Shown: piece after piece, positions 14,555 to 64,000 of the stretch
How the letters are laid out: each line of letters opens with the position of its first letter
Numbering within the stretch: position 1 is the first letter of the stretch
Source: Mobula birostris
Taxonomy: Eukaryota
Assembly (NCBI RefSeq): GCF_030028105.1
Contig: NC_092384.1
Span: forward strand, 4,011,665 to 4,075,664
DNA length: 64,000 nucleotides
Direction of reading: 5' to 3'
Translations under genes and position numbers: made by a program
Notes under the pieces: generated by a model
Seen by the model: the letters and a program-made list of their open reading frames with translations, nothing else
The model's database searches: none
What the model was told of the DNA's origin: nothing

Positions 14555-15634
14555 TTACCCATAGCTCTTTATTTTCCTAAGCTCCATGTAGCCATCCAGG
14601 AGTCTCTTAAAAGATCCTATCGTTTCAGCCGCCGGCAGCACATTCCACGCAATCACCACTCTCTGCGAGAAAAACTTACCCCTGACGTCTCCTCTGTATC
14701 TACTTCCAAGCACCTTAAAACTATGCCCTCTCGTGCTAGCCATTTCAGCCCTGGGGAAAAGCCTTTGAGTATCCACACACTCAATGCCTCTCATTATCTT
14801 ATACACTTCGATCATGTCACCTCTCATCCTCCTTTGTTCCAAGGAGAAAAGGCTGAGTTCACTCAACCTACTCTCATAAGACATGCTCCCCAATCCAGGC
14901 AACATCCTCCTAATGCTCCTTTTCACCCTTTCTATGGCTTCCACGTCCTTCCTGTAGTGAGGCGACCAGAAATGAGCACAGTACTCCAAGTGGTCTCTGA
15001 CTTGGGTCCTATATAGCTGCAAAATTACCTCTTGACTCTTAAACTCAATCACAAGATTGATGAAGGCCAATGCACCGTATGCCTTCTTAACTACAGAGTC
15101 AACCTGCGCAGCAGTTTTGAGTGTCCTATGGTCTCGGACCCCAAGATCCCGCTGATCCTGCACACTGCCAAGAGTCTTTACATTAATGCTGTATTCTGCC
15201 ATCGTATTTGACCTACCAAAATGAACCACTGCACGCTTATCTGGGTTGAACTCCATCTGCCACTTCTCAGCCCAGTTTTGCATCTTATCAATGCCCCGCT
15301 GTAACGTCTGACAGCCCTCCACACTATTCACAACACCTCCAACCTTTGTGTCATCAGCAAACTTACTAACCCATCTCTCCCCTTCCTCATCCCCTTCCTC
15401 ATCCAGGTCATTTATAAAAATTACGAAGAGTAGGGTTCCCAGAACAGATCCCTGAGGCACTCCACTGGTGACTGACCTCCATGCAGAATATGATTCGTCT
15501 ACAACCACTCTTTGCCTTCTGTGGATAAGCCAGTTCTGGGTCCACAAAGCAATGTCCACTTGGATCCTATGCCTCCTTACTTTCTCAATAAGCCTTGCAT
15601 GGGTTAGCTTATCAAATGCCTTGCTAAAATCCAT
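14555..15634 (-). pseudogene. CR1 ORF2 RT domain and C-terminus (359-codon open remnant)
   Basis: [25 protein letters not shown] and ERVK...MLPG motifs; upstream ORF2 is broken. Confidence 0.9.
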
Positions 15635-27507: not shown

Positions 27508-28807
27508 ATGGAGATTGAGGAATTTCTAAAGGCGCCGACCTTGGAGGCATTAGAGGATGCCAGGAAAGCGGAATTGGCAGCTGTGGCCAAATGGTTGAAT
27601 CTTGTTAAGGGAAAGTCGACAATGAGGAGAGAGGAGATGCACAGAGCTATCGTAGAGCACTATGTATCGAAAGGTGTGTTTCCCCAAGGGGAGCTGGAGG
27701 TGATATCTATTGGAAAACCTAGTGGAGATGCAGTACAGGTGCAGCTTGAAAAACTGAGACTCGAGCACGAGTTCCGGGTACAGCAGCTAGAACATGAAGA
27801 GAAACAGAGGGAAAGGGAGTTCGAGCTGGAAAGGTTAAGGATGATGGCAGCGCAGGGGCCCATGCCGAACCAAGGTGGAGGGTTCAGGGCGACCCAGGAG
27901 GTTAGGCTGGGTCCCCCATTTGACGATACCGATGTGGATCGGTACTTTCTCCATTTCGAAAAAGTTGCTGCAAGTCAGGACTGGCCGAGGGATAAGTGGG
28001 CTGTTTTGCTTCAGAGTGTACTTAAAGGAAAAGCCCAACAAGCTTACTCAGCTTTGTCCGCGGAAGATGCCCAGAGGTATGAGGTGGTGAAAGAGGCCAT
28101 CCTCAGGATTTATGAGTTGGTCCCGGAGGCATACCGGCAGAGGTTCCGGAATGCGAGGAAGCACGTATTTAGAGTTTTCCCGTGAGATGCAGACATATTG
28201 TGAGCGTTGGTGTGCCACGAAGGGGGTGGATGGGGATTATGACAGACTGCTACAGCTGATCCTGATTGAGCAGTTTAAAGGTTGTGTCCCTGAAGGTATG
28301 AGACCCTACCTAGATGAGAAAGAGGCAGCCACATTAGCCGCAACTGCTAAGTTAGCGTATGAGTACGCGTTGACGCATAAAATGAAGTTTGCCCCGAGTA
28401 AAGGCTACCAGAAGGGTAGTCAGGACGGTGGGGAGAGTCCGCCGGAAAAGTCAGAAAGTAAGCCAGGGACTAGTGAGGGGGATAAGGTAGACCGGGAGCA
28501 GTCTGGTAGGAAGTCTCCTGGGGTCTTCTATTATAATTGTGGGAAAGTCAGACACTTTGCGTCCAGGTGCTTTGCCCCAAAGAAGGAGACGGGAAAAGAA
28601 AAAACGGCGATTTTGACTGGTGGTATTGAGCTGGTAAACGAACCGCTAGGAGGGGAAAAGTCTGCCAAAGTTCAGGAAGGGCGCAAGAGGTTTTATCTTG
28701 GCCGGATTGGTGTCAGTGAAGGAGGGGTTAAACCCAGTTCCAGTGCGAATCTGGAGAGACACGGGTGCGTGTCAGTCATTGATATTGAAGAGTGTATTAG
28801 AGTTTAG
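27508..28807 (+). pseudogene. Gag with SCAN-related capsid region and degenerate zinc knuckle (one frameshift near 28165)
   Basis: WAVLLQSVLKGKAQQAY...YELVPEAYRQRFR; LILIEQFKGCVP; YNCGKVRHFASRC. Confidence 0.85.
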
Positions 28808-30180
28808 CTCAGAGACCCAGACTGGGGAGGTCAGGGTCAAAGGTATTGGGGAAGGGACAGAGGCAGTCCTTTTGCACCATATACCCCTACAAAGCAACTT
28901 GGTCTCTGGACTAGTCACGATCGGGTTGAGGCCCGAATTACCGATGAAAGGCGTGGAAGTCGTTCTCGGTAATGACCTCGCCGGGGGAACTGTGTTCTCG
29001 ACAGTGAGCTTGACAGGTCAGCCTGCCAGCATTGAGGCCCCGCCCATGGACTCACAGGTTCATCCCGGGACTGCTGAAGTAAATTTAGCTGAGACGTTTC
29101 TGCCAGCCTTGTACAAGGAGGGGGTAGAAAGTGAAAAGAAGGAACGTAATGAAACAGGAGGAAGTGGGGAAATTAAGGTAGATTTATCAGTAGAAAAGAA
29201 GGACTTTATACAGGTACAGGAGCAAGATGAGGAAACTGCTCTCTCTGAAGCAGGATTAAAAAGAGAGCCAGTAGGCTGTTGTGTGGAGGAGGGTGCGCTA
29301 AGGAAGGAAGGGAGACCAAGTACCGCAGATAAAGAATGGGGGATGGTGCCAAAAATCTCTGGGGATGAGATTTTTAACCTGGCCCACAAGGTACCCCTCG
29401 GAGGACATCTTGAGGTGCTGAAGGAAACAGTCGGCGGAATCATGAAAGAGGTTTACTGGCTGCACAGGAGGAAGGATGTTATTGACTATGGCAGACGCGA
29501 ACTGAGACAGTCACAGGCTTTTGATATGCTAATGAACCTAGTCGGTGTTAGCACGGAAATCAATGAAACTAGAGTCCCCCTGATAAGAAAAAAAAGAACA
29601 TTTTGAAAAGATGAGTATGGTATCAACCAGATGGGAGAAGGCTATTGATTTGGCCCTCTCTGCTGATAAGGTCTCTCCCTTAATCCCCGAACAAAGCGAC
29701 TCTTTAGGAGAATTAATTAAACGGCTCGCACACGTGTGTTTGATTGTCCCGAGGCGATGCAAAGAACTGGGACGTTGGGTGGTGTTTGTCACACTAGGTC
29801 AGCCTAGTGAGCAACACTCCTATAGAACGAGTAATCCAGTGACGAAAGGGCTAACGAACATTGGCGATGTAATACGGCTGTCTGAAGCCAGCTTGATAGT
29901 GAACCTTGAAAAAAATGAGTTCGGCCACACGAAGGTCACTTATCTGGGAATTGTGGTAACACAGGGGCAGCTGGCAGCAATGCAAGCTAAGGTGCGGGCT
30001 ATCTCTGACATCCCAACCCCGACAGACAAGAGGGCCCTCAGAAGGCTCTTGGAGATGGTGGGGTACTGTAGGAAGTTTTGCAATAACTCTGTGGTTACTA
30101 CCCCTCCCCCTCCTACTAAGCCCTTGCGAGAGAAACCTAAGTCGGGATGGGACGACCCTTGTTATCGTGGTCCAGGATGA
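28698..30180 (+). pseudogene. Deleted pol: aspartic protease, integrase N-terminal fragment, RT C-terminal fragment
   Basis: IWRDTGACQSLI; LAHKVPLGGHL; KVTYLGIVV...RRLLEMVGYCRKF; no IN core, RT core or RNase H seen. Confidence 0.8.
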
Positions 30181-45639: not shown

Positions 45640-47220
45640 CTGCAAGTGATCTATATTCCTCCATTCCTTCATTATTCTTGTTTCTATCTAACAAGCTCTT
45701 AATTATCACGGTAAATGATTCCATCACTGCAACAGGGAGCCCGTTCTAAGCATCTCCCGTGTAAAAGAAAATTTGCCCTGCACATATCCTTCCCCGAATT
45801 TAACAATTTTTTACATTAAACGTGTGTCCTCTTGTATTAGGGATTCCGTATTTTGGGTGGGGGTGGGGGTGATTCTTACTGCCTACTCTATCTATCCTCT
45901 AGAGAAAGCAATGAATGCCTGCTTATGATTTTCTTGGACTTCGTACTTTCTAATCCAGGCACTAGTTTGCTCATACTCATTTTACCCTCTCCAATGCCCT
46001 CATATTCTTTTGCAAAGTGGCCACCAAAATTAACGGTACTTTAACGTAATTAATTAATTAAATCCCGTCCAGTAATGGTAAACTTGACTAATACTTTCTT
46101 TACCGACCTGTCTACCTAATTTCAGTGAACTATGGACTTGGATCCCAAAACTGTTAACTGTCCTGTCAATAGTTGTATACTTTTCCTTTACATTTAACCT
46201 CGTAAAGCGTAACGCCTTACACCTGTTCAGATTAATGTTCATCTGTCATTTCTTTGATCGTACTTGTAAATTAGTTATATTCTACTATGTCGTGTAATGG
46301 CCCTACAAATTATATCAACTTTTGCGTTGTCTGCAGATATACTAACCTATGCACCTACCTTTTCACCCAAACCATGTACGTATCTCAAAAATAGTAGTGA
46401 CTCCACAACTGTGCAACACCAGTAGTCAAGGACATCCAGGCGGAATAACTCGCTGCCAACTACAACCCTCTGCTCGTAGTAGGCGAGTTAAACCTGAATC
46501 TAAAAATTAGCCTGCCCCAATTTCACACTTTAAACCCAAGGCCAGCCATATTCTTATTCATAGCTGTAGGTTAGCCTTCAGGGTTGTGATCACTGTTCCA
46601 AAAATGTTCTCAAATTGAATCTCCAAGAACAAGACCCATTTAATGTCTAGTTTGGCCCCTTCCGTTGAGTCATCTGCATGATGCGTCAAGAAACGTGGCT
46701 GAATACACCTCACAAATTCTGCTTTCTGCATTCAGAAACGCCCATGTCAAGACACCTTCCTGAGATCTCCTTGCAGCCAAAGAAATAGTCATTTATGTCC
46801 CTAACGAGAGAATCTCATATGAATTGGACACCTAGACCTCAATCTGCCCTGCTGTAGAACTCGCTTGCTCATGGTATCACTGGTCTGGCTGCAGTGATCT
46901 TTTCGCCTGAGAAGCTCGAGCTGCAAATGTATCCAAAACAGTATACCTATTTGAGGTGGACCAGCTACAGAAGATTCAGACACTAACAGCGTGCCCCTCC
47001 GGGCGAGCATTTATTGCTCTGACTTGACCTTTGGTGTAAGCATGTCGTTGAAACTGCTATCTATAATACTATCTGTTTTCTGTCTGGTCCTTAGTGACGC
47101 CATCTACCGCTACAATGGATCTAAAGGGTCTGAGGGCAGCAGCAGCATGACTCACTTCCGACACATATAGTTATCATGGACAGCTGGACACTTCCTCATC
47201 TCCCACATCTCGCAGGAGCA
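45640..47220 (-). mobile_element. Very old CR1 remnants
   Basis: MNINLNRCKALRF (cf. WQMxFNxxKC) and degenerate tail and ORF1 similarity. Confidence 0.5.
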
Positions 47221-47269
47221 GTAAACCACTCTACTGACAACCGTCATTAACCCTTTTAACTACAAGTAG

Positions 47270-47850
47270 CATTACAATCAGGTTTATTATAACTGACTTC
47301 TATGATGTGAAATTGGTTATTCTGTGCCAGCAGTACAGTGCAAAGACAGAAAGTTACTATTGTAAATAAATGGCCCAAATTGAACAATAGATTAGTATTT
47401 ATGGGTTCGTAATCCATTCAAAATCTGACTAGGTGGGAAAAAGCTGTTCCTATTTCGTTGAATCTGGCTCTTCATTTCCTGAGGAGGCATTATGTCCTGG
47501 ATGGTGGGGGGTCTTAAGTAATAAATGTCACTCTCTTGAGGCACTACCTCTTAAAGATAGTACCCTCAGAGATGCGGCAGGTTGTGTCTGTGATGGTGCT
47601 GGCTACGCCTACAGTCCTCTGCAGCCTCCTGTAATCTAGTGCTTTGGAATATCCATGCCGGTGTGTAATGCACCCTGTCAGAATGTTTTCCACAGCGCAT
47701 TTGTACAAATCTGCAAAGTCTCTAATGATATACCAAATCTGCTCCAACTTCAATCAAAGCAGAGCCGCTGACATCCCATATTGGTGATTGTGTTAATTTG
47801 CTGGGCCTAGGATGCTTCTCCCGAAATGTTGACTCCCAAGAACTTGACAC
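47270..47850 (-). mobile_element. Rex1/Babar-type LINE 3' fragment
   Basis: LYKCAVENILTGCIT...RRLQRTV..ASTIT; 3' UTR resembles 39760-39830. Confidence 0.7.
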
Positions 47851-48066
47851 GAGAGAAAGAAAAGGGAAAACGTATCCTTCCCCTGCCTTACTTGATCTTG
47901 CTAGGCATCCTCATCAAAGCCGTCCTTCACCAAATGCCGCACTTTAACTTCGATCTCAAAGCTGTCTTCTCAAACTGCCTTTTTTTAAAAAAAGACGTGT
48001 CGTTTCCAGGCAATGGGGCGTAGCCAACAAATATATAAGAAGTGGAGAACAGCAAACAAACGAGAT

Positions 48067-48082
48067 TTCCAGGAAAATGAAA
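48067..48082 (+). promoter_or_regulatory. Overlapping GAS (TTCCAGGAA, 48067-48075) and ISRE core (GAAAATGAAA, 48073-48082)
   Basis: Exact matches to TTCN3GAA and GAAANNGAAA about 350 bp upstream of the ATG, in non-repeat DNA. Confidence 0.5.
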
Positions 48083-48164
48083 ATAAGTGTAGAGGCCAAT
48101 GATCTTGTGAAATCTCAAGGTGCCTGTTAACCGAAACCTTCACCACTTGTTCTGTTCTTACTTG

Positions 48165-48254
48165 TTATTTCCTGTCCCGCCGACAAAAATTGAGAAGCTG
48201 TGGATTTTTGACCTTATTATTTCTTGACATAATACAGCCCTTTATTTCCTGTCC
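48165..48254 (-). promoter_or_regulatory. Duplicated 13-mer containing an ETS-type site (GGACAGGAAATAA on the minus strand) at 48165-48177 and 48242-48254
   Basis: Exact repeat of TTATTTCCTGTCC, 77 bp apart. Confidence 0.45.
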
Positions 48255-48286
48255 TTGCTTCCGACCAAAGCTAATCAGTCAAACCC

Positions 48287-48295
48287 TATATTAAA
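48287..48295 (+). promoter_or_regulatory. TATA-like box TATATTAAA
   Basis: About 130 bp upstream of the leader ATG. Confidence 0.4.
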
Positions 48296-48425
48296 GGGCA
48301 TGCATTTCTCAGCAATGTCCTGCGGGCAATTGACCTGATTAAGTATTAGTGTAATAAGATATCGAAATGTATTGACGCCTACCCACCAGATACTCACTTT
48401 CTTCTGCTCTGTTGTCGACGCTGAT

Positions 48426-48480
48426 ATGTTTCTGAAGCGGTCATTTTGGACCATCTATTTACTTGCCATTGTGAATGCGG
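48426..48480 (+). CDS. IgSF gene exon 1: signal peptide MFLKRSFWTIYLLAIVNA
   Basis: Basic, hydrophobic, then V-N-A cleavage-like end; phase-1 GT donor at 48481 is in frame with the next exon. Confidence 0.8.
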
Positions 48481-48708
48481 GTATACAGTAATTTCTATTA
48501 TTCCTTAGTTAAGGTTCTTTACAAAACCCCACACGTGATATAGTGTTGATGAGATAGTTATTTTTTCTGTGATTTACCGGACCTCAGTGAGGATGGTGAA
48601 ACGGCCACAGAATAATATTTGTGCTATTCGAATTTTGAGTATCGCGGTCAGTTGTTAAAAAAAAATCCTACCAATGACTAAATCCGAGTGTGTATCGTTT
48701 ATTGACAG

Positions 48709-49020
48709 ATGCTGTGGATGTGCCGGGCAAGGCAGCTCCGGATACTTTTCCGAATATAGTCCTCAGCGGTACAAACTTTACTTGCCGATGCTCCTTCCGC
48801 TTCGATCTTAATCAGTCAAATCTCAGAGTTTACTGGTGGAGAGGTGAAAATAAGACTTTTATAAAGGAAGATAGCAGAAAATTGATCAGCATAAAGACAG
48901 GAGGCGCCTACCTTCACCTCCTGAATGTCACCGTCTCGGACGCCGGAACATATTATTGTGCCGTTAAACAAGCGGAACAAACGATCGGAAGGGGACCAGG
49001 ACAGCAGGTTGTCGTACATG
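48709..49020 (+). CDS. IgSF gene exon 2: VJ-type V-set Ig domain (104 aa)
   Basis: Acceptor tttattgacAG and donor GTGAGC, phase 1/1; CSF (strand B), VYWWR (C), DAGTYYC (F), J-like GRGPGQQVVV (G); no stops. Confidence 0.92.
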
Positions 49021-49400
49021 GTGAGCGGAGTTACAATTATAAACGAGGTCTTTAGTTATGATCCAGACTCGAATTTTGATTCACAAAGAATGCAGAGTAG
49101 AGTTGTGTAAAACATTGTAATTTGATTTGAAGAGCATTTGCTCGTAAATGCAGGAGACTAACAAATGCTGACAGAAGGTAATATCATCTACGATATTTGA
49201 TGTGATCTATGTCACGGATAGTGAACGTATGGCTGCCAATTAAATCGCGCCTTCAATTTGAAAACTGAACAACGAGGCTAGGACACGGGTCGCTAAGCTC
49301 TGTAATTTAAATAATTAAACCTAATCCACATCAGATTAATTCTCTAAACCGAATTAAAACTCTATAATTTGCGGAAAAGACAAAACCACCACCGTTGTTA

Positions 49401-49576
49401 GACACAAACAAGAGAAAATCTGCAGATGCTAGAAACGAAAGCAGCACAAAAAATGGTGAAGGAACTCAATAGGCCAGGCAGCATCTATGGAAAAGATATG
49501 AACGGTCTCGGCATGAAACTTCGACTGTACTCTTTTCCATGGTCTGCTGAGTTCCTCCAGCAATGTGTCTGTGTTG
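49401..49576. mobile_element. Palindromic Penelope-terminus-derived element in intron 2
   Basis: First half matches the Penelope terminus seen at 870-950 and the second half is its reverse complement; exact inverted arms ATGGAAAAGA/TCTTTTCCAT and GGAACTCA/TGAGTTCC. Confidence 0.7.
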
Positions 49577-49908
49577 TTCGTTGTCAAGTCAATGTCTGGA
49601 AATCGATGATGTTGGGACGAGAGTTGTTCTTGACGTAACACCAGCTCTCTGCTCAAAAATTGCTGGAAACTGTATCATTCGGACGCTTTAACACCAGCAG
49701 AAACAATCCGCAAACGGAATCCAGGTTATTAAATATATATAGGGAAATATGAGGGAAGGTTACATAATTATAGTGCAAAACAGCTTTAAATTGGTTCACA
49801 ATTTACAGTTTATTATAGACCTGTTATGCATCCAACCATGTGCTAATTGATTAGAAAATTTCAAAACGAAAAGGGTTTTGTTTTATTTTAATTTTCCCCT
49901 TCTTTCAG

Positions 49909-50214
49909 CTGTTCCCTCTCCTCTGAAGATCGTATCTATGCGATCGGCAAAATCTTCATCTGCTTTCCTGATACTCCAATGCAGAACAGCTGCTTTTTAT
50001 CCAAAAGAATTTAACCTCACCTGGCATAAAAATGGTACAGAGGTCCAGCATGGAATCAAACATGAACAATATCCAACTGTAGGGGGATTATATGAAGTTA
50101 TCAGCTCTTTGGAAGAGTCACAGCCAGTCAAGAAAGGCACGGTTTATGCATGTCAAGTTCACCATATTTCGACATCAGTTCCAGCAACTGCCAACTTCAC
50201 GGTTTCTAAAGAAG
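49909..50214 (+). CDS. IgSF gene exon 3: C1-set Ig domain (102 aa)
   Basis: Long pyrimidine tract plus ttcAG and donor GTAATG, phase 1/1; LQC..AFYP, LTWHKNG and YACQVHH C1 signatures. Confidence 0.92.
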
Positions 50215-50329
50215 GTAATGCCTTACAGTGGACATTTTAATTGATGGAAATACGTTGAAATGTTTCAGGCAAATGTAAGCCGTTTTTCAAGCAGCCGGTT
50301 GCATATGTTAGTCCCGCTCCCAGAGGCCA

Positions 50330-53300
50330 GGAGGCATCTTTCCACCAGTCATGCGCACAAACGCTGACTGCTGAAGGAACTCAGCGTTGAAGATCGTGTG
50401 CAGCATTTCCCAGAGCAAAAAAAAAAGTATACCTCTTTGGATACTGCTGGGTTGGGGAGAGGGGGTGACCCATGAGATCACGGCAACAGCTGCCAGGCTG
50501 GTGGCACTGTGGGCGGATCTGAAGCTCAACAGGGAAGGGCAAAGTAAAACAGTGTGGTAGTTATAGGGGATTCGATAGTTATGGGGACAGAAAGGAGATT
50601 CTTTGGCAGTAAAAAGAGCAGGATGCTGTGCTGTCTCCTGGGTGCTATGCTCCATGATGTATTGGAGTGGGTGCAAGAACAGCCAGATGGCATAGGCAGA
50701 AAAGGGAAAGAGGTCCTAGGCAGTAAGTATATAGAGTTAGGAAGTAGGCTGAAGAAAAAGACATTCGAAGTTGCAATCTACGGATTGGAACCTTTTTTGG
50801 GGAAGGGGTGATGTGCAAAATGGACGGGTTTCCCCTGAACTGGAAGGGAACCAACATCCTAGCCGGGTGGTTCACTCTTGCTACTCAGATGAGTTTAGCT
50901 AGTTTTGTAGAGGGCAGTGAACCAGAGCTCCTGGTCAGTAAGGGAAGGATCGGACCAGAAGAAAGTTGTCAGGGAAAGTACTGAGAGGGGAAAAATGGAA
51001 ATAACAGGTATGAATGATGGGAAGTATTTTAACGCTATGACTATTATGGGTAAGAGTGATGAGTGTGGATCATTGAAACAGTTGAGAGAGGGGCAGGGAT
51101 GGATGACTAATGTATCAAGTTTTCGAAGTATTAGAAAAGACATCAGAGGAGGTAAAAGGGGGGGACTGAGTTGCACTACTGATCAGGGACAATATCACAA
51201 CTGCAATCACGTGAAGGCGTAATGGATGAGTGAGACACTGAGTCCATTTGCGTGGAACTCACAAACTGGAAGGGTGCAATTGCACAGGCCGGATTGTACT
51301 TCAGACCCCATAATTGCCACCGGGAAAATTATGTAATCAGATAAGGAAATGTGCAAAAATAATAGGATTCTTGTCATGGGGGATTTCAACTTCCGTAATA
51401 TAAGCTGGAAACTTCTGAGGGCAAGGGGTTTAGATAAGGCTGAATTTGTTAAGTGTATCCAGGAAGATTTATTGAATCAGTATGTGGATGGTCCAACGAG
51501 AGAAGGGGAACGACTGGACCTGGTGTTGGCTAATGACCCTGGTCAGGTGACTGACCTTTCAGTAGGTGAACAGTCAGGAAACAGTGACGTCAACTCCTTA
51601 ACTTTCAGGATAGCTACAGATAAGGATAGGTATGGTCCTTGTGGTAGAATTATAAATTGGAGTAGGGAAAATTATGAGGACATTAGGCAGGAACTAAAAA
51701 GCATTAATTGGGACCACCTATTCTCTGATGTGCGTGTCACATCAGACACAGATGGAGTTTAAAGGTCAATTGCACAGAGTACAAGAAAGGGATGTTTCTG
51801 TTAGAAGGAATGACGGGGATGGAAAGATAAGAGAACCTTGGATGTTCAAAGAGGTGGTGATTTTAGTCACGAGGAAAATGGAAAAATATGTAAATCTTCA
51901 GAAGTTAGAATTAAACAAAGAACACGAATTATCTAAGGAAACTAGAAAAGAACTGAAGAACGGAATTAGGAAAGCCAGAATAAGCCATGAAAAGGTTGTG
52001 GGAAGTAGGATTAAGATGAATCCCAAGTCATTGTATGCATACATCAAGACAAAGAGGATAATTATAGAGAGGGTTGGACCACTCTACGATAAAACGGGGA
52101 ACACTTTCTTGGATGCAGGGAGTGCTAGTGAGGTACTTAATGAGTACTTTGTTTCAGAATTTACCAAGGAAAAGGGTATAGAGGACCAGGAGATTAGTTA
52201 GCTGACTGTTAAGTTAGGGGTTTTGGTGGTCGAGGAAGAGGGAGTGTTGGGCCTCCTTATGAGCATTAAAGTTTCCTGAGCATACTGGGATTTGTCCCAA
52301 GGTTATTGAAGGGGGCAAGAGATAAGATTACTGGGCCTTTGCCCAGTATCGTTGTGTCCTCTCTAGCCACAAGAGGGGCTCCAGATGACTGGCGAATGGC
52401 TAAAGTTGTACCTCTATTGAAGAAGGGAACAGGGGAAAATCCTGGAAGCTATATACTGGTGAGTCTCACATCAGATGTAGGGAAATTGCTGGAGAAAATT
52501 CTTACAGTTAGGATATGAGCATTTGGAAACCCGTGGCCTAATTAGGGAGAGGCAGCATTGCTATTTGCGTGTCAAGTCATAATTACCAACTTGACTGCGT
52601 TTCGTGCCAAGGTGATGAGAGAGATTAGTGAGGATAGGACAGTTGATGTTGTCTACATGGATTTTGGTGAGATATTTGACAGTCCCAGATGGGAGGCTAA
52701 TCCCGAAGATTATGAAGCAACATAGGGTCCATGGCAACATGGTTGTTTGGATTCTGAACTGGCTTGTGCATAGAAGGGACATATTCAATCTGAAGGTCTG
52801 CAATTAGAGAAATTCCGCAGGAAACTGTACTGGGACATCTGCTGTTTGTGATGTAAATAAATAACCTAGATATGGATGAAAGTGTACATGGGTGGGTTAA
52901 TAAATTTGCTGATGATACCAAGGTTGCTGGAGTTGTAGATAGTGTAGAAAACTGGCAATGAATTCAGCCCAATTTTTATCAGTGGCAGATATGGGCAGAT
53001 AAATGGCAAATGGAGTTTAACCCAGATAAATGTGAGGTGCTGCACTTCAGAGGAGCAAATGCAAGCAAACAGCACACTGTTAAGAGCAAGATCCTTAAGA
53101 GTGCTGCTGAACTGAGAGATCTTAGGATCCAAGTTCATAGCTCCTTTAAATAAGCTACACAGGTCGATACGGTAGTTAGGAAGGCTTATGGGATGCTTGC
53201 CCTTATTAGTTGAAACAGTGAGTTCAAAAATCAGGAGGTTATGTTGCAACTTTATAAAACAATGGTTAGGCCTGCATTTCATACAGTCCCACTATCGGAA

Positions 53301-53820
53301 GGATGTCGAGACTTTGGAGACGGGGTATTAAAGGTTTAGCAGAATTCAGCCTCGTTTAGAGGGCAAGTGCTATCACGGGAGGCTGGTAAACTTGTTTCTT
53401 CTTCTCTAGAGCATCAGAGGCTGAGGGGAAATCTGCCAGAGATTTACAAGGTTATGAGAAGCATAGATAGAGTGGGCAGAGTATATCTGCTTTCAAGTGA
53501 TCAAATGTCTAATACCAGTGGGCATGCATTGAACGTGAGAGCGGGTAGTTTCAAGGGATCTGAGGGTCATTTATTTTTACTCTGAGAGTGGTAGGATTCC
53601 TGGAATGCACTGCTTGGTATGCTGGTAGAGGCAAATACATTAGAGGCGTTTAAGAAGTGTTTGGATAGGCACGTGGTTATAAGGAAGATGAAAGGATAAG
53701 GTCATAATGTAGGTAGGAGGGATAAGTGATAGGTTGTTTTGGATTAGCTCTTTTATCTGATTCGGTACAACACTGCGGGCCGAATGGCCTGTCCTGTGCT
53801 GTGCTGTTCTATGTTCTATG
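50330..53820 (+). mobile_element. Degenerate near full-length CR1 (ORF1 esterase, APE, RT, TTCTATG tail)
   Basis: VVIGDSIVMG; MGDFNF; LDLVLANDP; KFADDTKV; tail ctgtgctgtgctgttctatgttctatg. Confidence 0.85.
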
Positions 53821-53849
53821 TGGAGGGTTATAAACAGACGACATTTTGA

Positions 53850-54535
53850 ATAAATAGAGACCTTTTATTGGGAGTGGTCAGGAAGAGGGCATAAGCCAGC
53901 ATAGGAAAATTGACGGGCGGGTGGTGGGGGCCTGTTGTAAGCTGGCAGATAGTTGAGACTAGGTGAGAGCGAAGATGGGTGGGTAAGAACCTGAGATGTG
54001 AAAGGTGGAAGAAGCAAAGGGTTGAAGAAGATGGAATCTAACAGGAGTGGACAGTGAACCTTGGAAGAAGGGAAGAGGTGCTATAGGGAGACAGTGGGCA
54101 GGTAAGGCGAAGGGATGAGAGGGAAAACAGAATGGGGAATAGACAAGAAAGAATGAAAGAAGGGGGAGAAATTAGCAGGTTAGAAAAATTGATGTTTATG
54201 TCATCAAGTTGGAGGCTATCTACATGAAATGTGAGGTGTTGCTCCTCCAACCTGACATGACCTCATCATTGCAGTACAAGGAGGTTCAGAGATATCAGAA
54301 TATAAACTGGAAGTCCAATTGAAATAAGAAGCCAGCAGGAGATCCTACTTCTTGCATTGGACGTATCGAAGGTGCTCAACGATTGGTCCCCCAATCTGTG
54401 GCGGGTCTCACCACAGATTAAGCGTCGTTTCACCTGGAAGGTCTGACTTGGGCGTGTAGTGGCAGGCATGACACTTGTAATGCTTGCAGGAATGGATGTC
54501 ATGAGAGAAATGAATGGGGAAGGATAAATGGACAA
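53850..54535 (-). mobile_element. Penelope-like 3' remnant (GIY-YIG)
   Basis: QTFQVKRRL..CGETRHRLGD; EQHLTFHVDSLQLD.ININFSN. Confidence 0.7.
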
Positions 54536-54599
54536 GCAATATCTGCTCCCTTAACCGTACATCGACTCAGATCCAATTGTCCTGTCTATAATCTAGGGT

Positions 54600-56270
54600 T
54601 ATTCTCATTGCCCGTATCTACTGCCCCACAACACTCAGTATCCAGCACAGCATCCTCAATATCTTCTGTCTTGTTAACCACAGAGTCAACCTGCCCAGTT
54701 ACTTTGAGCGTACTATGGACTCGGACCCCAAGATCCCACTGGTCATCCACACCACCAAGAGTTTTACCATTAATACTATATTCTGCCATCATATTTGACC
54801 TCCCAAAATGAACAATTTCACACTTATCTGGGTTGAACTCCATCTGCCACTTCTCAGCTCAGTTTTGCATCCTATCACTGTCCTGCTGTAACCACTGACA
54901 GCCCTCCACACTATCCGCAACACCCCCCAACTTCTGTGTCATCAACAAACTTACTAAGCCATCCCTCATCATCATCATCCAGGTCATTTATAAAAACCAT
55001 GAAGAGTAAGGGTCCCAGAACAGATCCCTGAGGCACACCACTGGTCACCGACCTCCATACAGAATATGACTGGTCCACAACCACTCTTTGCCTTCTCTGG
55101 GCAAGTCAGTTGTGGAGCCATAAAGCAATGTCCCCTTGGATCCCATGCCTCCTTACTTTCTCAATAATCCTTGCATGGGGTACCTTATCAAATGCCTTGC
55201 TGAAATCCATATATACTACATCTACTGCTCTACTTTCATCAATGTGTTTAGTCACATCCTCAAAAAATTCAATCAGGCTCGTAAGACACAACCTGCCCTT
55301 GACAAAGCTATGCTGACTATTCCTAATCATATATACCTCTCCAAATGTTCATAAATCCTGCTTCTTAGTATCTTCTCCATCAATTTACCAAACACTGAAG
55401 TAAGACTCACTGGTCTATAATGTCCTGGGCTATCCCAACTCCCTTTCTTGAATAAGGGAACAACATTGGCAACCCTCCAATCCTCCGGAACCTCTCCCGT
55501 CCCCATTGATGATGCAAAGATGATCGCTGGAGTCCCAGCAATCTTCTCCGCACCTCCCACAGTAACCTGGCGTACATCTCATCCGGTCCCGTTGACTTAT
55601 TCGACTTAATGCTTTCCAAAAGCTCCAGCACATCCTTTTTCTTAATATCTACATGCTCAGGCATTTCAGTCCGCTGCAAGTCATGCCTACAATCACCAAG
55701 AACCCTTTCCATAGTGAATACTGTAGTAAAGTATTCATTAAGTACCTCTGCTATTTCCTCTGGTTCCATATGCACTTTCTCACTGTCACATTTGATAATT
55801 TGTATTCTTTCATGTCTTATCCTGTTGCTCTTCACATACTTGTAGAATGCCTTGGAGTTTTCTTTACTCCTGCCCGCCAAGGCCTTTTCATCGCCATTTC
55901 TGGCTCTGCTAATTTTCTTCTTAAGCTCCTTCATGTTAGCATTAGAATGTTCTAGATCTCTAACATTACCTAGCTCTCTTAACCTTTCGTAAGCTTTTCT
56001 TTTCTTTTTGACGAGGTTTACTTCAGCCTTTGTACACCACATTTCCTATACCCTACCATAACCTCCCTATCTTGTTGGAACGTGCCTATGCAGAACTCCA
56101 CACAAATATCCCCTGAAAATTCGGCACATTTCTTCCGTACCCTTCCCTGAGAATATCTGTTCCCAGTTTAGGATTGCAAGTCCCTGCCTAATAGACCCAT
56201 AATTCCCTTCACCCTTCACTTCACCTAAATGCTTTTCTAACTTGTCTGTTCCTATCTCACTCCAATGCTA
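54600..56270 (-). mobile_element. CR1 family A internal fragment
   Basis: MEFNPDKC, VYMDFSKAFDKV and DWRVANVVPLFKKG motifs. Confidence 0.85.
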
Positions 56271-56309
56271 TTGAAATTCTAGTTTCATGTAACTTGGATC
56301 AGAAGGTGT

Positions 56310-59300
56310 AGAATCAGAAGGGTCGAGCTAAGAAACTACAAAAATAAAACCACTCTGATGGGAATTACATACATATACCCAATCAGTAGCAAGAATTTGA
56401 TCTACAAATTACAAAGGGAGAGAGAAAATACATTTTATAAAAAAAACAATATTGCAATAGTCATGGGGTATTTCAATATGCAGGTCGATTGGAAAGATCT
56501 ACCTGCATATTGAAATTGGTAGTGGATCACAGGAAGGGAAGGGGTGTTGTAGAATGCCTATGCGATGGCTTTTTAGAGCTGCTCTTGTTTGAGCCCACCC
56601 GGCATCAGCTATTCTAGATTTAGTGTTGTACGACAAATTGATCAGAGTGGTTAAGGTAAAGGAACTGTGAGAAGGAGAAACTGAAGCCAGATATATCATT
56701 TCTTAGTGCATGCATGCATTTCTAAATAACAATAAACGAGGACTGAGTGTCCTCATATTCTAATATATTCCTATTACAGTGGAGTAAAAAGAATTACAGA
56801 AACATGAGAGAGGAGCTAACCAAAACTGCTTGGAAGGGAACAGAAGCAGAGGTGACAGCAGAGTACCAATGGCTAGAGTACCTAGGAGCAAATCATAAGG
56901 GGCAGGATAGCTACATCCCATCAAAGAAGTATTCTAAAGGCAGGATGACACAAATGAGGCTGACAAGAGAAGTCAAAGCCAACATATATGCCAAAAAGAG
57001 GGCGTATAATACAGCAACATTTAGTGGAACGTTAGAGGATTGGAAATCTTTTAAATACCAACAGAATGCAACCAAAGAAGTAATAAAGAAAGAAAGGATG
57101 GTATATGAGTGTAAGCTAGCCAACCATATGAAAGCAGATACAAAAGTTTCCTTAGACATAAGTATATAAAAGAGATGTGAGGGTAGATATTGGACCACTG
57201 GAAAAAAAAACCCCTGAAGAGGTAGTAATGGGGTCGAGGAAATAGTGGACGAACTAGACACATATTTTGTATCATTATTCTCTGGGGAAGACACCAGCAG
57301 TGTGCTGGAAGTTTCTTAGGGGAAGACGTGAGTGAAGTTGCCAATACAGGGGAGAAGGTGTTTGTGTAACTGAAAGGTCAGAAGTTAGATAGGTTACCTG
57401 GACCAGCTGATGTACACCCCTGCTCTCAGAAGGAGATGCCCAAAAAGATCGTAGAGGTTTTTCTAATGATATTTCGAGAATCAATGGATTCTGGAATAAT
57501 TCCAAAGGACTGAAAAATTGCAAATGCCACTCCACACTTCAATAAGGAAAAGAAGCAGAAGAAAGGAAACTACACACCAGTTAGTCTGACCTCGGTGGCT
57601 GAATGGATGCTGGAGTCGATTTTTTGAGGGTGTGCTTCCAGGGTACATGGAGGCACATGATAACATTAGCCATAGTCAGCATGGTTTCCTCAAGGGAAAA
57701 TCTTGCATGACACATCTATCGGCATTCCTTGAAGAAATAACAAGCAGGATAGACAAAGGAGAATCTTTGCATGCTGTATACTTAGCTTTTCAGAAGGCCT
57801 TTGTCAAGGTGCTACACATGAGGGTGATTAACAAAAATTAGGAACCCATAGAATTACAGAAAAGATACTAGCATGGATAAAGCATTGGCTGATTGGCAGG
57901 AAGCAAAGAGTGGGAAAAAAGTGGACGAGTCTGTGGCGTATTTGAGATTGGTCTGAATGACGTTGTGGACATTACTGAGCCGAGGATGAAGGAAGGCCAC
58001 GGTTGGGAGCTTAGCAACGAAAGATATGTTTTGTATCAAAAGGACAGGCGGGAAGGCATAGACGGTGATGTAGCTCTGTTGGTAAGATATGAAATTATAT
58101 CTTTATAAAGGGGTGACATAGGGTCAGAGAATATTGGATCTTTGTGGGTGTAGTTACAAAATTGCAAGGGTAAAAATCACTAGGGGAATCATATATAGCC
58201 TCGGAATAGTAGTAAAGATGTGGGGCTGAGATTGTAAAGGGAGTTGAAAAGGCATGAAACAAGGGTAATAGCACAATAATAATGGGGGACTTCAATATGC
58301 AAGGGGATTGGGAATATCAGGTAGGTCTTGGATCGCAAGAAAGGAAAATTCTTGAATCCATACCAGATGGATTTTTAGAGCAGCTTCTCTTTGAGCCTAC
58401 TTGGGGAAAGACTATCTCAGACTGAGTGTTGTGGAATAACCTAGATCTTATTAGGGAGCTTAACGTGAACGAACCCTTAGGAAGCAGTGATTATAATATG
58501 TTTGATTTCGTACTGCAATTGGAGAGGGAGAAATATAACTCCTAAGTATCTGTATCGCAATGGAATAAAGGGAATTACAGAGGCATGGGAGAGGAGCTTT
58601 CACAAGTGGATTGGAAGAGACCGCTGGTGGGAATGATGGCAGAGCAGCGATGGCTGTAGTTCCTGGGGGGTTTTCACAAGGCCCAGGATAGATATGTTGC
58701 ACAAAGGAAAAAGTTCTCAAATAACAGGGGCAGGAAATCGTGGCTGACAAAGGAAATTAAGTACTGCATAAAAGCCAAGAAAAGGCCACATAATGTAGTA
58801 CAAATGAGTGGATGATTGGTATCCTTTTAACATCCAACAAAAGTCAAGGATAAAAGCTATAAGAATAGGAATATGAAATATGAAGGCAGACTAGCCAGTA
58901 ATATTAGGAAGGATACCAAAAGTGTTTTTTTTTTCAGTTATATAAAGAGCAAAAGGAAGGTGGGAGTTGATGTTGGAAGACTGAGGGATGATGCTGGTGA
59001 GGTAGTAATGGGGGACAAAGAAATGACAGGTGAACTGAATGGGTACATTGTATCTGTCTTCACTGTGAAAACACTAGCAGTGTGCCAGGAGGTTCATGAG
59101 TGCCTCTGTTATTACAGAGGAACAAATGCTAGGCAAACTCAAAGGTCTTAAGGTTGATAAGTCACCTGGGCCAGATAGACTACATCCCAGAGTCCTGAGA
59201 GAGGTTGCTACAGAGATAACGGATATATTGGTCATGATTTTTCAAGAATCATTTGATTCTGGGATGGTCCCGGAGGACTTAGTTGCAAATGTTACTCCAC

Positions 59301-60720
59301 TCTTTAAAAAGAGAGGCCGGTTAGCCTAACCTCGGTGGTTGGGAAGGTATTGGTGTCAGTTGTTAAGGATGAGGTTTCAAGGTACTTAGAGACTGATGAC
59401 AAAATAAGTCAAAATCAGCATGGCTTCTGTCAAAGGACATCTTGCCTGCCAAATCTGTTAGAGTTCTTCAAGGAAGTAACAAGCAGGGTGGACGGAGGGG
59501 AGGCGATGGATGTCATTCACTTCGATCTTCAGAAGGCATTTGATAAGGTGTCACATGTGAGGCTGCTTAACAAGATACAATCCTATGGTGTTACAAGAAA
59601 GATACTGGCATGGATAGAGGAATGGCTGATAGGCAGGAGGCAGCATGTGGGAATAAAAGGGGCCTTTTCTAGTTTGCTGTCGGTGACTAGTGGTGTTCCT
59701 TAGGGGTCAGTATTGGAACCACTACTTTTCACATTGTTTGTTGGTGATTTGTATAATGGAATTGATGGCTTTTTGGCAAATTTGCTGATGATATGAAGAT
59801 ATGTGGAGGTGTTGGTAGTGCTGCGGAAGAAATGCAATTGCAACAGGACTTAGACAAGTTGAAAGAACGGGTAAAAAAGTGGTAGATGGAATACAGTGTT
59901 GGAAAATGTATTATAATACATTTAGGTTAAAGGAACAATAGTGCAGACTGTTATCTAATTGGGGAGAAGATTCAAACATCAGAAGTGCAGAGGGACTTAG
60001 GAGTCCTCATGCAAGACTCCCAGCAGGTTAAATTTACAGGCTGAGTCTGTGGTGAAGGCAAGTGCAATGTTAGCAGTTAATTCAAGGGGATAGAATATAA
60101 AAACAAGGAGAAAATGCTGTGCCGTTATAAGACACTGGTCAGGCCACACATAGAATACTGTCAATAGTGTTGGGCCGCATAAATCAGAAAGGATGTGCTA
60201 TCATTGGGGAGAGTCCAGAGGAGATCCACGAAGAAGATACCAGAAATGAGGAGGTTAACAAATGAAAAGAGTTTGGCAGCTTTGGGCCTGTACTCATTGG
60301 AACTTAGAAGGATGTTGGCAGGGTGGGGGGGCGGGGGGTGGGAGGCACGGAATCTCATTGAAACCTACCGAATATTGAAGGGACAAGATAGGGTGGATGT
60401 TGAGAGGATGTTTCCTGTGGTGGGGGTAGCCAGAACTAGAGGGCAAAACTTCAAAATTTAGTGGCAACTCTTTAGAACAGAGGTAAGATGTTTTTGCCAG
60501 ACAGTAGTAAATTTCTGGAATTCTATGCCACAGACTGCGGTGGAGGCCAAGTCCGTGCATATATTTAAGGCAGATGTTAACCGTTTCCTGATCGAGCGGG
60601 AAATAAGGATATGATGAGAAAGCAGGTGTATGGGTTGAGTGGGATCCAGGATCAGCCATGATGGAATGGCAGAGCAGACCTGATGGGCTAAGTGGCCTAA
60701 TTCTGCTACTATGTCTTCTG
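56310..60720 (+). mobile_element. Two tandem degenerate CR1 family B-like copies (about 56310-57900 and 57920-60720)
   Basis: APE restarts at about 57940 after RT motifs; DKSPGPD, DLQKAFDKV and SGVP motifs; CR1 tail near 60660-60720. Confidence 0.75.
56698..56762 (+). mobile_element. Third, tail-only copy of the AATCT-tailed retroposon
   Basis: gcatttctaaataacaataaacgaggactgagtgtcctcata; flanked by ATATATC / ATATATT. Confidence 0.7.
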
Positions 60721-60949
60721 ATCTTATGGTCTTATGGAGGGAGCATTTTTGGTCAGCTGCCGTGACTAAGGTGTTCCATAGGAGTGAGAGTTGGGACCTC
60801 TTCTTTTTACATTACATGTCAATAAGTTTGATGTAGGAATTGATGGCTTTATTGTCAAGTTTCCGGACAATTCAGGACTGAAAAGCTAATCATATAAGCA
60901 GACGTTTGATGGATCTGGGACTTTACTCACTAAAATCCGGAAGTATGAA

Positions 60950-63840
60950 ACACAGAAAAGTAGAATTCCTACAGCACAATACTGGCCCTTTGGCCACAAA
61001 GCTGTGCCGAACATGTGCTTACCTAAGAACTACGTAGGCTTACCCTTAGCCCTCTATTTTTCTAAGCTCCATGTATCCATCCAGGAGTCTCTTAAAAGAC
61101 CCTATCGTTTCCGCCTCCACCACCACTGCCGGCAGCCCATTCCACGCACTCACCACTCTCTGTGTAAAAAAACTTACTCCTGATATCTCCTCTCTCCCTA
61201 CTTCCAAGCACCTTAAATCTATGCCCTTTAGTACTAGCCATTTCAGCCCTGGGAAAATGACTCCGACTATCCACACGATCAATGGCTCTCATCATCTTGA
61301 ACACCTCCATCAGGTCGCTTCTCATACCCCGCCACTCCAAGGAGAAAGGGCCAAGTTCACTCAACCTATTCTCATAAAGCATGCTTCCCAATCCGGACAA
61401 CATCATTGTAAATCTCCTCTGCACACTTTCAATGGTTGCCACGTCCTTCCTGTAGTGAAGCGACCAGAACTGAGTACATTACTCCAAGGGGGATCTGACC
61501 AGGGTCCTATGTATGTAACTGCAACATTACGTCTCGACTCTTAAACTCAATCCCCTGACTGATGAAGGCTAATGCACCGTATGTCTTCTTAACCACAGAG
61601 ACAACCTGCGTAGCAGCTTTGAGTGCCTGATGGACTCGGACCCCAAGATCCCTCTGATCCTCCACACTGCCAAGTGTCTTGCCATTAATCTTATATTCTG
61701 CCATCATATTTAACCTACCAAAATGAACCACCTAACAATTAAATGGGTTGAACTCCATTGGCGACTTCTCAGTCCAGTTTTGTATCCTATCAACATACGC
61801 TGTAACCTCTGACAGCCCTCCACACTATCCAGAACATCTCCAACCTTTGTGTCATCAGCAAATTTACTAACCCATCCTTTCACTTTCTCATCCAGGTCAT
61901 TTTTAAAAATCACAAAGTGTAGGGAACCCAGAACAGATCCCTGAGGCACATCACTGGTCACCGGCCCCCATGCAGAATATGACCGGTCTGCAAACACTCT
62001 TTGCTGTCTGTGGGCAAGCCAGTTCCGGATCCACAAAGCAAGGTCCCCTTAGATCCCATGCCTTCTTACTTTCTCAATAAGCCTTGCATGGGGCGGCTTA
62101 TGAAATGCCTTGCTAAAATGCATACACACTACATCTGCTGCTCTACCTTCATCAATATGTTTAGTCACATCCTCAAAAAATTCAATCAAGCTTGTAAGGC
62201 ACGACTTGTCTTTGACAAAGCCATGCTGACTAATCGGAACCATATTATGCTTCTCCAAATGTTCATAATTCTTATCTCTCAGGATCTTCTCCATCAACTG
62301 AACAACCACTGAAGTAAGACTCGCTGATCTATAATTTCCTGGGCTATCCCTACTCCCATTCTCGTCCAGAACGAGGGGTCACAGTTTGAGGATAAAGGGG
62401 AATCCTTTTAGGACTGAGATTAGGAAAAACTTCTTCACACAGAGAGTGGTGAATCTGTGGAATTCTCTGCCACAGGAAACAGTTGAGGCCAGTTCATTGG
62501 CTATATTTAAGAGAGAGTTAGATATGGCCCTTGTGGCTAAAGAGATCAGGGGGTAGGGAGGGAAGGCTGGTGCAGGGTTCTGAGTTGGATGATCAGCCAT
62601 GATCATACTGAATGGCGGTGCAGTCTCGATGGGCCGAATGGCCTGCTCCTGCACCTATTTTCTATGTTTCTATGTTACTATGTTTCCCACAGTAGCCTGG
62701 GGTACATTCCATCCGGATCCGGTGACTTACACAACATGACCCTTTCCAAAATCTCCAGCACATCTTATTCCTTAATATCAACATACTCAATCTTTAAGTC
62801 TGCTGCAAGTCATCCCTACAGTCGCCAAGATCCTTTTCCGTAGAGAATACTGAAGCAAAGTCTTTATTAAGTACCTCCGCTATCTCCTCCGGGTCCATGC
62901 ACACTTTTCCACTGTCACACTTGATTGGTCCTATTCTCTCACATCTCTTCCTCTTGCGTTTCACATACTTGTAGAATGCCTTGGGGTTTTCCTCAATCCT
63001 ACCTGCCAAGGCCTTCTCATGACCCCTTCTGGCTCTCCTAATTTCTTTCTTAAGCACCTTCCTGCTCGTCGTATAGTCCTCTAGATCTCTATCGTTTCCT
63101 AGTATTTTGAACCTTTTGTAAGCTCTTCTTTTCTTCTTGACTAGATTTACGACAGCCTTTGTACACCACAGTTGCTGTCCTCTACCATCCTTTCCCTGTA
63201 CCATTGGAACGAATCTGCGCAGAACCTCACGCAAATATCCCCCGAACATTTTCCACATTTCTTCCGTAGGTTTCCCTGAGAACATCTGTGTCAAACTTAT
63301 GCTTGCAAGTTCCTGCCTGATAGCCTCATATTTCCACTTACTCCAATTAAACGGTTCCCTAACTTGTCTGTTCCTATCCCTCTCCAATGCTATGGTAAGG
63401 GAGATAGAATTATGATCACTATCTCCAAAATGCTCTCCCACTGAGGGACCTGACACCTGACCAGGTTCATTTCCCAATACCAGATCAAAAACAGCCTCTC
63501 CTCTTATAGGCTTATCTACATATTGTGCCAAGAAACCTTCCTGAACACACCTAACAAACTCCACCCCATCTAAACTCCTCACTCTAGGGAGAAGCCAATC
63601 AATACTTGGGAAATTCAGATCTCGCAGCGCCACAACCCTGTTATTATTACTGCTTTCCAGAATCTGTCTCCCTCTTTGCTCCTCGCTGTCCCTGTTACTA
63701 TTGGGTGGTCTACAAAAAACACCCAGTAGAGTTTATGAACCCTTCCTATTCCTAACTTCCACTCACAGAGACTCTCTAGACAGCAACCCCTCCAGGTCTT
63801 CCTCCTTTTCTAAAGCCATGACACTATCTCTGATCAACAG
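60950..63840 (-). mobile_element. CR1 family A (RT to APE), interrupted at 62365-62678
   Basis: ORFs 61092-62309 (RT) and 62794-63633 (GDLNF..DLVLGNEP..SDHN). Confidence 0.85.
62365..62678 (+). mobile_element. CR1 family B 3' end inserted in the opposite orientation
   Basis: Reverse complement of 19700-20000-type sequence; tail cctgcacctattttctatgtttctatg. Confidence 0.8.
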
Positions 63841-64000
63841 AGATAGTATGAGGGGGGATCTCATTGAAGCATACTGAAAATTGAAAGGCCTTGACAGAAT
63901 GGACGTGGAGATGATCTTTTCTATGTTGGTGGATACTAACACAATAGGACAATACCTTTGAATAGAGGCGCACCTATCTAGAAGGAAGATGTGAAAGAAT

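Follow-up and report, generated by a model that had tools for sequence, protein, structure and literature searches.

A non-rearranging V(J)-C1 receptor gene of Mobula birostris and its SIRP-like family in cartilaginous fishes

The SIRPs are paired receptors, with SIRP-alpha and SIRP-beta as the pair that serves as our source of analogy (PMC12975943), and they have been argued to stand close to the precursor of the antigen receptors, to which the C1-set domain ties them (PMC2785349). In cartilaginous fishes, single-exon VJ domains combined with C domains are also found in UrIg and UrIg2, which have multiple C domains, nine of them in nurse shark UrIg2 (PMC12227049). Here we describe a gene on a 64,000-nucleotide stretch of DNA from Mobula birostris (assembly GCF_030028105.1, contig NC_092384.1, positions 4,011,665 to 4,075,664 of the forward strand; this whole stretch is called the window), in which three exons at 48426-50214 encode a leader, a V domain with a ready-joined J-like strand and a single C1 domain. 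To our knowledge, C1-set domains are confined to antigen receptors, the major histocompatibility complex (MHC) and a few relatives. We consider it probable, as one joint reading, that the three exons make up the 5' part of a real gene for a non-rearranging type I membrane receptor, with orthologues in other batoids, that this gene belongs to a cartilaginous-fish family homologous to the SIRPs, and that it is of the activating type.

Exon structure, orthologues and family

The receptor gene is made up of the following features, the last of which contains long interspersed nuclear element (LINE) and reverse-transcriptase (RT) fragments.

48426..48480, forward strand: exon 1, start codon and signal peptide (split leader); 55 nt; donor G/gtatac; phase 1
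48481..48708, forward strand: intron 1; 228 nt; GT...AG borders
48709..49020, forward strand: exon 2, compact V domain that includes a germline-joined J-like G strand; 312 nt; acceptor ttattgacag/, donor G/gtgagc
49021..49908, forward strand: intron 2; 888 nt; GT...AG borders
49909..50214, forward strand: exon 3, C1-set constant domain; 306 nt; acceptor ccttctttcag/, donor G/gtaatg; phase 1
50215..64000, forward strand: intron 3, first part; GT donor; LINE/RT fragments and repeats; extends past the window end

Leader, V and C1 each occupy one exon, every junction is in phase 1 with canonical GT/AG borders, and the spliced frame runs from the ATG at 48426 for 224 aa without a stop. A preliminary description of this locus, made from the sequence, had proposed the same three stop-free exons, splice sites and leader-V-C1 frame, and all of its coordinates and lengths proved exact. 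The leader has the hydrophobic core FWTIYLLAIV. Exon 2 matches the Pfam V-set domain at 31.2 bits (cut-off 26) and exon 3 the C1-set domain at 44.6 bits (cut-off 21); the two exons are 50-99% identical to annotated proteins from other cartilaginous fishes, a level of sequence matching far beyond chance.

The V exon has the canonical Cys, Trp and DxGxYYC together with four N-glycosylation sequons, and it ends in YYCAV...GRGPGQQVVVH, where a G-x-G-x-G bulge is followed within the same exon by an alternating hydrophobic G strand. No pair resembling the heptamer and nonamer of a recombination signal sequence (RSS) was found in 47000-51500. The C1 exon carries FYPKEFNLTWHKNG ... YACQVHH and three sequons, giving the mature part seven sequons in all, with five cysteines. 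One of these cysteines is additional, lying two residues ahead of the canonical B-strand Cys of the V domain; it is common to all batoid orthologues, and since the shark relatives have a buried hydrophobic residue at this position we do not take it for an interchain bridge. No further V or C1 exon is present anywhere in the window. A weak C1-like match at 4371-4496 was rejected as chance: it has stop codons and lacks the Ig hallmarks.

Searched exhaustively with HMMER, the C1 exon gave 504 library matches at E<=0.001. Among them is a set of proteins 250-450 aa long, with a single C1 match at residues ~123-221 and 40-61% identity, which have the architecture leader-V-C1-transmembrane segment. 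All 30 of the family clusters whose names were looked up come from cartilaginous fishes (sharks, rays and the chimaera Callorhinchus), and the family comprises dozens of predicted paralogues from chimaera to sharks. It is known from RefSeq computed gene models rather than from studied proteins, and its automatic names are inconsistent: 'uncharacterized', 'SIRP-alpha-like', 'SIRP-beta-1-like', 'tapasin-related-like', 'NCR3LG1-like', 'lambda light chain-like' and 'class II beta-like'. The family-invariant columns are all kept in the window gene, in the V domain (Cys, Trp in VYWWR, D.G.YYC and the G-x-G ... V strand) as well as in the C1 domain (P.PLKI, C.T..FYP, NLTW.KNG and Y.C.V.H).

Two members depart from this layout. 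In the skate Amblyraja radiata, P0005 (XP_032892405.1) has two nearly identical tandem C1 domains, apparently from a recent exon duplication, so the family is not bound to a single C1 domain. In Heterodontus francisci, P0162 (XP_067906072.1) has a duplicated block in its cytoplasmic tail that yields four LTYAAL motifs, so the number of immunoreceptor tyrosine-based inhibitory motifs (ITIMs) is expanding within the family.

The Mobula hypostoma orthologue is XP_062922643.1 (P0171, 254 aa), and its RefSeq name, 'natural cytotoxicity triggering receptor 3 ligand 1-like' (NCR3LG1-like), is misleading. P0171 agrees with the window gene in exon content. The leader is identical to that of P0171 at 18 of 18 residues by tblastn and at the first 20 of 20 spliced residues in the alignment. 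The C1 domain is 99% identical, differing at one of 101 residues, and the V domain 94% identical, with six substitutions, three of them within the FG/J region. A paralogue diverges between M. hypostoma and M. birostris by about as much as the window gene does from P0171. Four residues at the start of the V exon, VDVP (12 in-frame bases, 48715-48726), are present in the window and in other batoids and absent from the M. hypostoma model, which reflects a genuine difference between the species or a mistake in the RefSeq model. Further batoid orthologues are Hypanus XP_059849414.1, Hemitrygon XP_072926654.1 and Pristis XP_051884512.1; V identity to the window is 76-77% for Hypanus and Hemitrygon, 67% for Pristis and 62% for Heterodontus P0015.

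In a maximum-likelihood tree of 66 ectodomains (quick search, rooted on SIRP-alpha), the window gene and P0171 are joined first by Hypanus with Hemitrygon and then by Pristis, with support of 97-99 in the Shimodaira-Hasegawa-like approximate likelihood ratio test (SH-aLRT). The window gene is sister to P0171 at 99, the batoid orthogroup receives 99 and the enclosing elasmobranch clade 100. By these sequences, the batoid group is a one-to-one orthogroup within a multigene family, and its tree follows the species tree. The search for orthologues and paralogues that the preliminary description had recommended has thus yielded both, one-to-one in the batoids and as a multigene family from chimaera to sharks, in the form of computed gene models. 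Its suggestion of a possibly uncharacterised family holds in one sense, as literature searches combining SIRP and cartilaginous-fish terms found no description of the V(J)-C1 family, experimental or otherwise, and fails in another, as there are a RefSeq model in M. hypostoma, batoid orthologues and dozens of paralogues. The window gene is a further member of a family already predicted in databases, not a new kind of gene.

Relation to SIRP and to B7-H6

Outside the family itself, the nearest relative is SIRP by profile search, hhalign, BLASTP and tail comparison, in agreement with the SIRP-like character proposed earlier. The best non-chondrichthyan match of a profile built from 24 family members is rodent SIRP-alpha (134 bits), followed outside the cartilaginous fishes only by a frog Ig-like protein and a carp NITR. 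In hhalign the family aligns with SIRP-alpha at 99.2% probability, and the alignment is collinear from the V domain to the beginning of the first C1 domain, with the J-like GxGT..V motif and the linker included. By BLASTP, P0171 is 30% identical to SIRP-alpha over 147 aa (E 1e-12), and the ectodomain profile scores 109 bits against the SIRP-alpha chain 2wng_A of the PDB, covering profile positions 6-196. The long tails of the inhibitory members show, in the same order, the four tyrosine motifs of SIRP-alpha (xTYAxLxL, xxYAx, LTYAxLDx, xEYAxx); of eight tails aligned with that of SIRP-alpha, seven give z 5-12.5, none of 500 shuffles reaching the observed score, and the eighth, that of P0015, is not significant (z 2.6, 12 of 500 shuffles). 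In a language-model protein atlas, a SIRPB1-like (SIRBL) cluster appears at rank 2. Taken together, these comparisons suggest that the family is probably homologous to the mammalian SIRPs in its V domain, in the first C1 domain and, for the inhibitory members, in the four-tyrosine ITIM tail.

Several observations weigh against assigning the family simply to SIRP. SIRP has two C1 domains (V-C1-C1) and the family one. Its V domain is compact, with a Cys-Cys span of 56 residues, and has no C'' strand in the AlphaFold2 (AF2) model, whose predicted local distance difference test (pLDDT) score is 86.6 and which looks like an I-set or IgNAR domain. A fold search with the V domain gave a mixture of I-set, TCR V-alpha and IgNAR V matches and was uninformative, and whole-ectodomain structure searches placed B7-H6, other B7 proteins and butyrophilins, and TAPBPL first, not SIRP, at 22-24% identity. 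The C1 exon taken alone scores 37 bits against B7-H6, with SIRP below the matches listed. In PDB profile searches with V, C1 and whole-ectodomain profiles, multi-domain chains such as titin and Ig heavy chains crowded the results, which give no domain-by-domain ranking of SIRP against B7-H6.

The structural matches raise the alternative that the gene is a homologue of B7-H6 (NCR3LG1), as the RefSeq name of the orthologue has it, and that its product is a ligand shown to NKp30-type receptors, not a receptor. B7-H6 leads the Foldseek matches of the orthologue model in the PDB and Swiss-Prot (6yjp_E, with a TM-score by target of 0.67, 3pv6_A and Q68D85), followed by CD276, PD-L1 and butyrophilins; the C1 exon matches B7-H6 chains at 36-37 bits, and both proteins have the V-C1-transmembrane layout. 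However, the identity behind these matches is low, and the global score is driven by the inter-domain angle of the AF2 model. The ray V domain has a J-like GxG...V strand and is collinear with SIRP-alpha d1-d2, the long tails of the family carry the SIRP-alpha-type pattern of four tyrosines, and the orthologues, with an Arg in the transmembrane helix and no tail, are built like receptors that use an adaptor and not like the long-tailed B7-H6. Moreover, B7-H6 is not among the best 60 PDB matches of the two-domain sequence profile, whereas SIRP-alpha is. We consider a B7-H6 homologue unlikely, and read the structure-search result as reflecting the shared V-C1 layout and the extended inter-domain angle of the model, and the sequence and tail evidence as pointing to kinship with SIRP.

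A more specific form of the SIRP reading can be offered tentatively: the family may be the cartilaginous-fish branch of the SIRP lineage, and the batoid gene an independently evolved activating partner with an Asp/Arg anchor. If this is true, a V(J)-single-C1 receptor with a four-tyrosine tail and short-tailed activating partners would predate the split between cartilaginous and bony vertebrates, and SIRP-type paired receptors would offer a present-day model of the non-rearranging VJ-C1 design that may have given rise to the antigen receptors.

Membrane anchor, proposed function and intactness

In the orthologues the ectodomain runs from ...FTVSKE straight into a hydrophobic segment, ..AVDWIVRGSLAALVF.VWA.IIYFAYK, which forms one long helix in the AF2 model. 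The batoid transmembrane consensus is ..A(V/L)(D/G)WIVRG..YF(A/V)(Y/C)K, with the Arg present in 4 of 4 species and the Asp in 3 of 4; almost no residues follow the segment, and there is no ITIM.

By analogy with the SIRPs, long-tailed members of the family would recruit SHP phosphatases through their ITIMs, and members that have a short tail and a basic residue in the transmembrane segment would couple to an adaptor bearing an ITAM (a tyrosine-based activation motif of immunoreceptors). Since the batoid orthogroup is short-tailed and has a transmembrane Arg, we propose that it encodes an activating, adaptor-coupled receptor. From the last exon of the orthologues we infer that the batoid gene is of the activating type, as SIRP-beta is to SIRP-alpha, and that when expressed its conserved transmembrane Arg and near-absent tail would recruit DAP12, FcR-gamma or CD3-zeta as the ITAM adaptor.

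The ectodomain would provide the recognition part. In every species pair the V domain is less conserved than the C1 domain (94 versus 99, 76 versus 89, 77 versus 85 and 67 versus 73% identity), and its changes are concentrated at the N-terminal strand, around BC and C-C' and in the FG loop, with the E-F framework invariant. This substitution pattern fits a predicted ligand-binding tip: the glycosylated V domain would bind a ligand through its fast-evolving BC, C-C' and FG loops, the last of which resembles complementarity-determining region 3 (CDR3), and the C1 domain may act as a spacer or a pairing module.

Some points weigh against an intact activating receptor in this genome. Searches of the window for the transmembrane exon of the orthologues, by tblastn with the P0171, P0170 and P0169 tails and by motif, did not find it, and the activating design of the window gene would thus be taken over from the last exon of the orthologues. 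In these orthologues the Asp stands four residues before the transmembrane Arg, an arrangement that adaptor-coupled receptors do not usually have. The database searches matched no protein of the window's own genome, where the gene may be unannotated or differently modelled. The description of the gene as intact is therefore not borne out within the window, which holds its first three exons; that the gene is intact in this genome is plausible from the sequences of the orthologues.

The same observations could be explained by a truncated or decaying copy, in which three exons are left without a working transmembrane exon and are stranded among transposons. The transmembrane exon was not found in the 13.8 kb downstream of exon 3, LINE/RT copies pack intron 3, and the lack of a match from the window's own genome would be in keeping with decay. 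Yet the three exons are all open with canonical splice sites, the framework residues are all retained, and the near-identity to M. hypostoma (one difference in the 101 residues of C1, none in 20 of the leader) argues against a decaying copy. The M. hypostoma gene spans 25.4 kb and the window keeps 15.6 kb from the ATG onward, so the last exon is expected beyond the window end. A decaying copy is quite unlikely for these reasons, and we retain the interpretation of the three exons as the beginning of a receptor gene that is plausibly complete.

As noted in the preliminary description, the gene is an island among transposable elements: its flanks consist of transposon debris, with reverse transcriptase, a SCAN/gag-like open reading frame (ORF) and repeated elements. 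Upstream, at 14555-15634 on the reverse strand, an ORF of 359 aa contains a reverse-transcriptase domain (RVT_1, 64 bits); other large ORFs near it are without a Pfam match, and the region looks like transposon debris. At 28112-28804 on the forward strand, within a run of same-strand ORFs at 27508-30180, is a SCAN-domain ORF (Pfam, 28.5 bits); it probably belongs to a retroelement as a gag-like part and not to the host as a zinc-finger gene. Within intron 3, an element of ~1.3-1.5 kb occurs twice on the forward strand, at 54667-55963 and 61582-63092, the two copies being 79-84% identical and ~6.9-7.1 kb apart, with LINE endonuclease/RT-like frames before and between them (51.3-53.6 kb and 56.3-60.6 kb).

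Comparison with other VJ receptors and with SIRP

The preliminary description had also linked the gene to NKp30 and UrIg, and a relic near the pre-RAG ancestor of the antigen receptors, with NKp30, UrIg or PRARP-type VJ genes as nearer kin than SIRP, would share several of its features. NKp30 has a single-exon VJ domain with a G-x-G-x-G motif. In the ray gene C1 directly follows the V domain, the orthologues have a transmembrane Arg as NKp30 does, and UrIg2 is among the better PDB matches of the C1 exon, together with C1 domains of MHC-I-like alpha3, Ig and B7-H6. Nevertheless, neither NKp30 nor the UrIg2 V domain is among the best PDB matches of the V exon or the V profile, NKp30 is without a C1 domain, and UrIg2 (chain 9dmx) is matched by the C1 exon through its C domains only, the best stretch scoring 21.8 bits. 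UrIg and UrIg2 further differ in being linked to the MHC or the antigen-receptor complex and in having conserved V domains of their own besides several C domains (PMC12227049). The PDB searches with the V exon and V profile gave these links no sequence support, and we regard a pre-RAG relic as highly unlikely. A rearranging Ig or TCR gene is dismissed by the J-like strand within the V exon and by the lack of RSS-like elements in 47000-51500; the reading as a non-rearranging leader/VJ/C1 gene that is not IgL, TCR or IgNAR stands as first proposed.

At the level of this locus the gain is modest: a correct model for a gene that is apparently absent from the protein set of this genome, and a better name than "NCR3LG1-like". 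To the correct model the locus adds an orthogroup, a conserved Arg/Asp membrane anchor and the similarity of the family's tails to that of SIRP-alpha. At the level of the family, a SIRP-like V(J)-C1 group with inhibitory and activating-type members in cartilaginous fishes would push the design back to the base of the jawed vertebrates, and it offers natural material for testing ligand binding by ready-joined VJ domains.

Compared with the described systems, NKp30 is the simplest, with one VJ-type domain followed by a stalk and a transmembrane segment, in contrast to the C1 exon of the ray gene. UrIg and UrIg2 share with it the single-exon VJ domain, the split leader, the C1 domains and the restriction to cartilaginous fishes (PMC12227049). 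Unlike them, the ray gene has one C1 domain, and its V exon has no UrIg V match at E<=0.01. The loci also differ from that of the ray gene (PMC12227049). B7-H6 resembles the ray protein in the V-C fold of the ectodomain and in the C1-type membrane-proximal domain, a similarity of fold only, and differs from it in that the ray gene has a J-like strand and, in its orthologues, a receptor-type membrane anchor. The closest counterpart is SIRP: in both, a V domain with a J-like strand is followed by C1, and the short-tailed relatives have a basic transmembrane residue like SIRP-beta, with the difference that the ray orthologues carry an Arg (and Asp) where SIRP-beta has the basic residue that binds DAP12.

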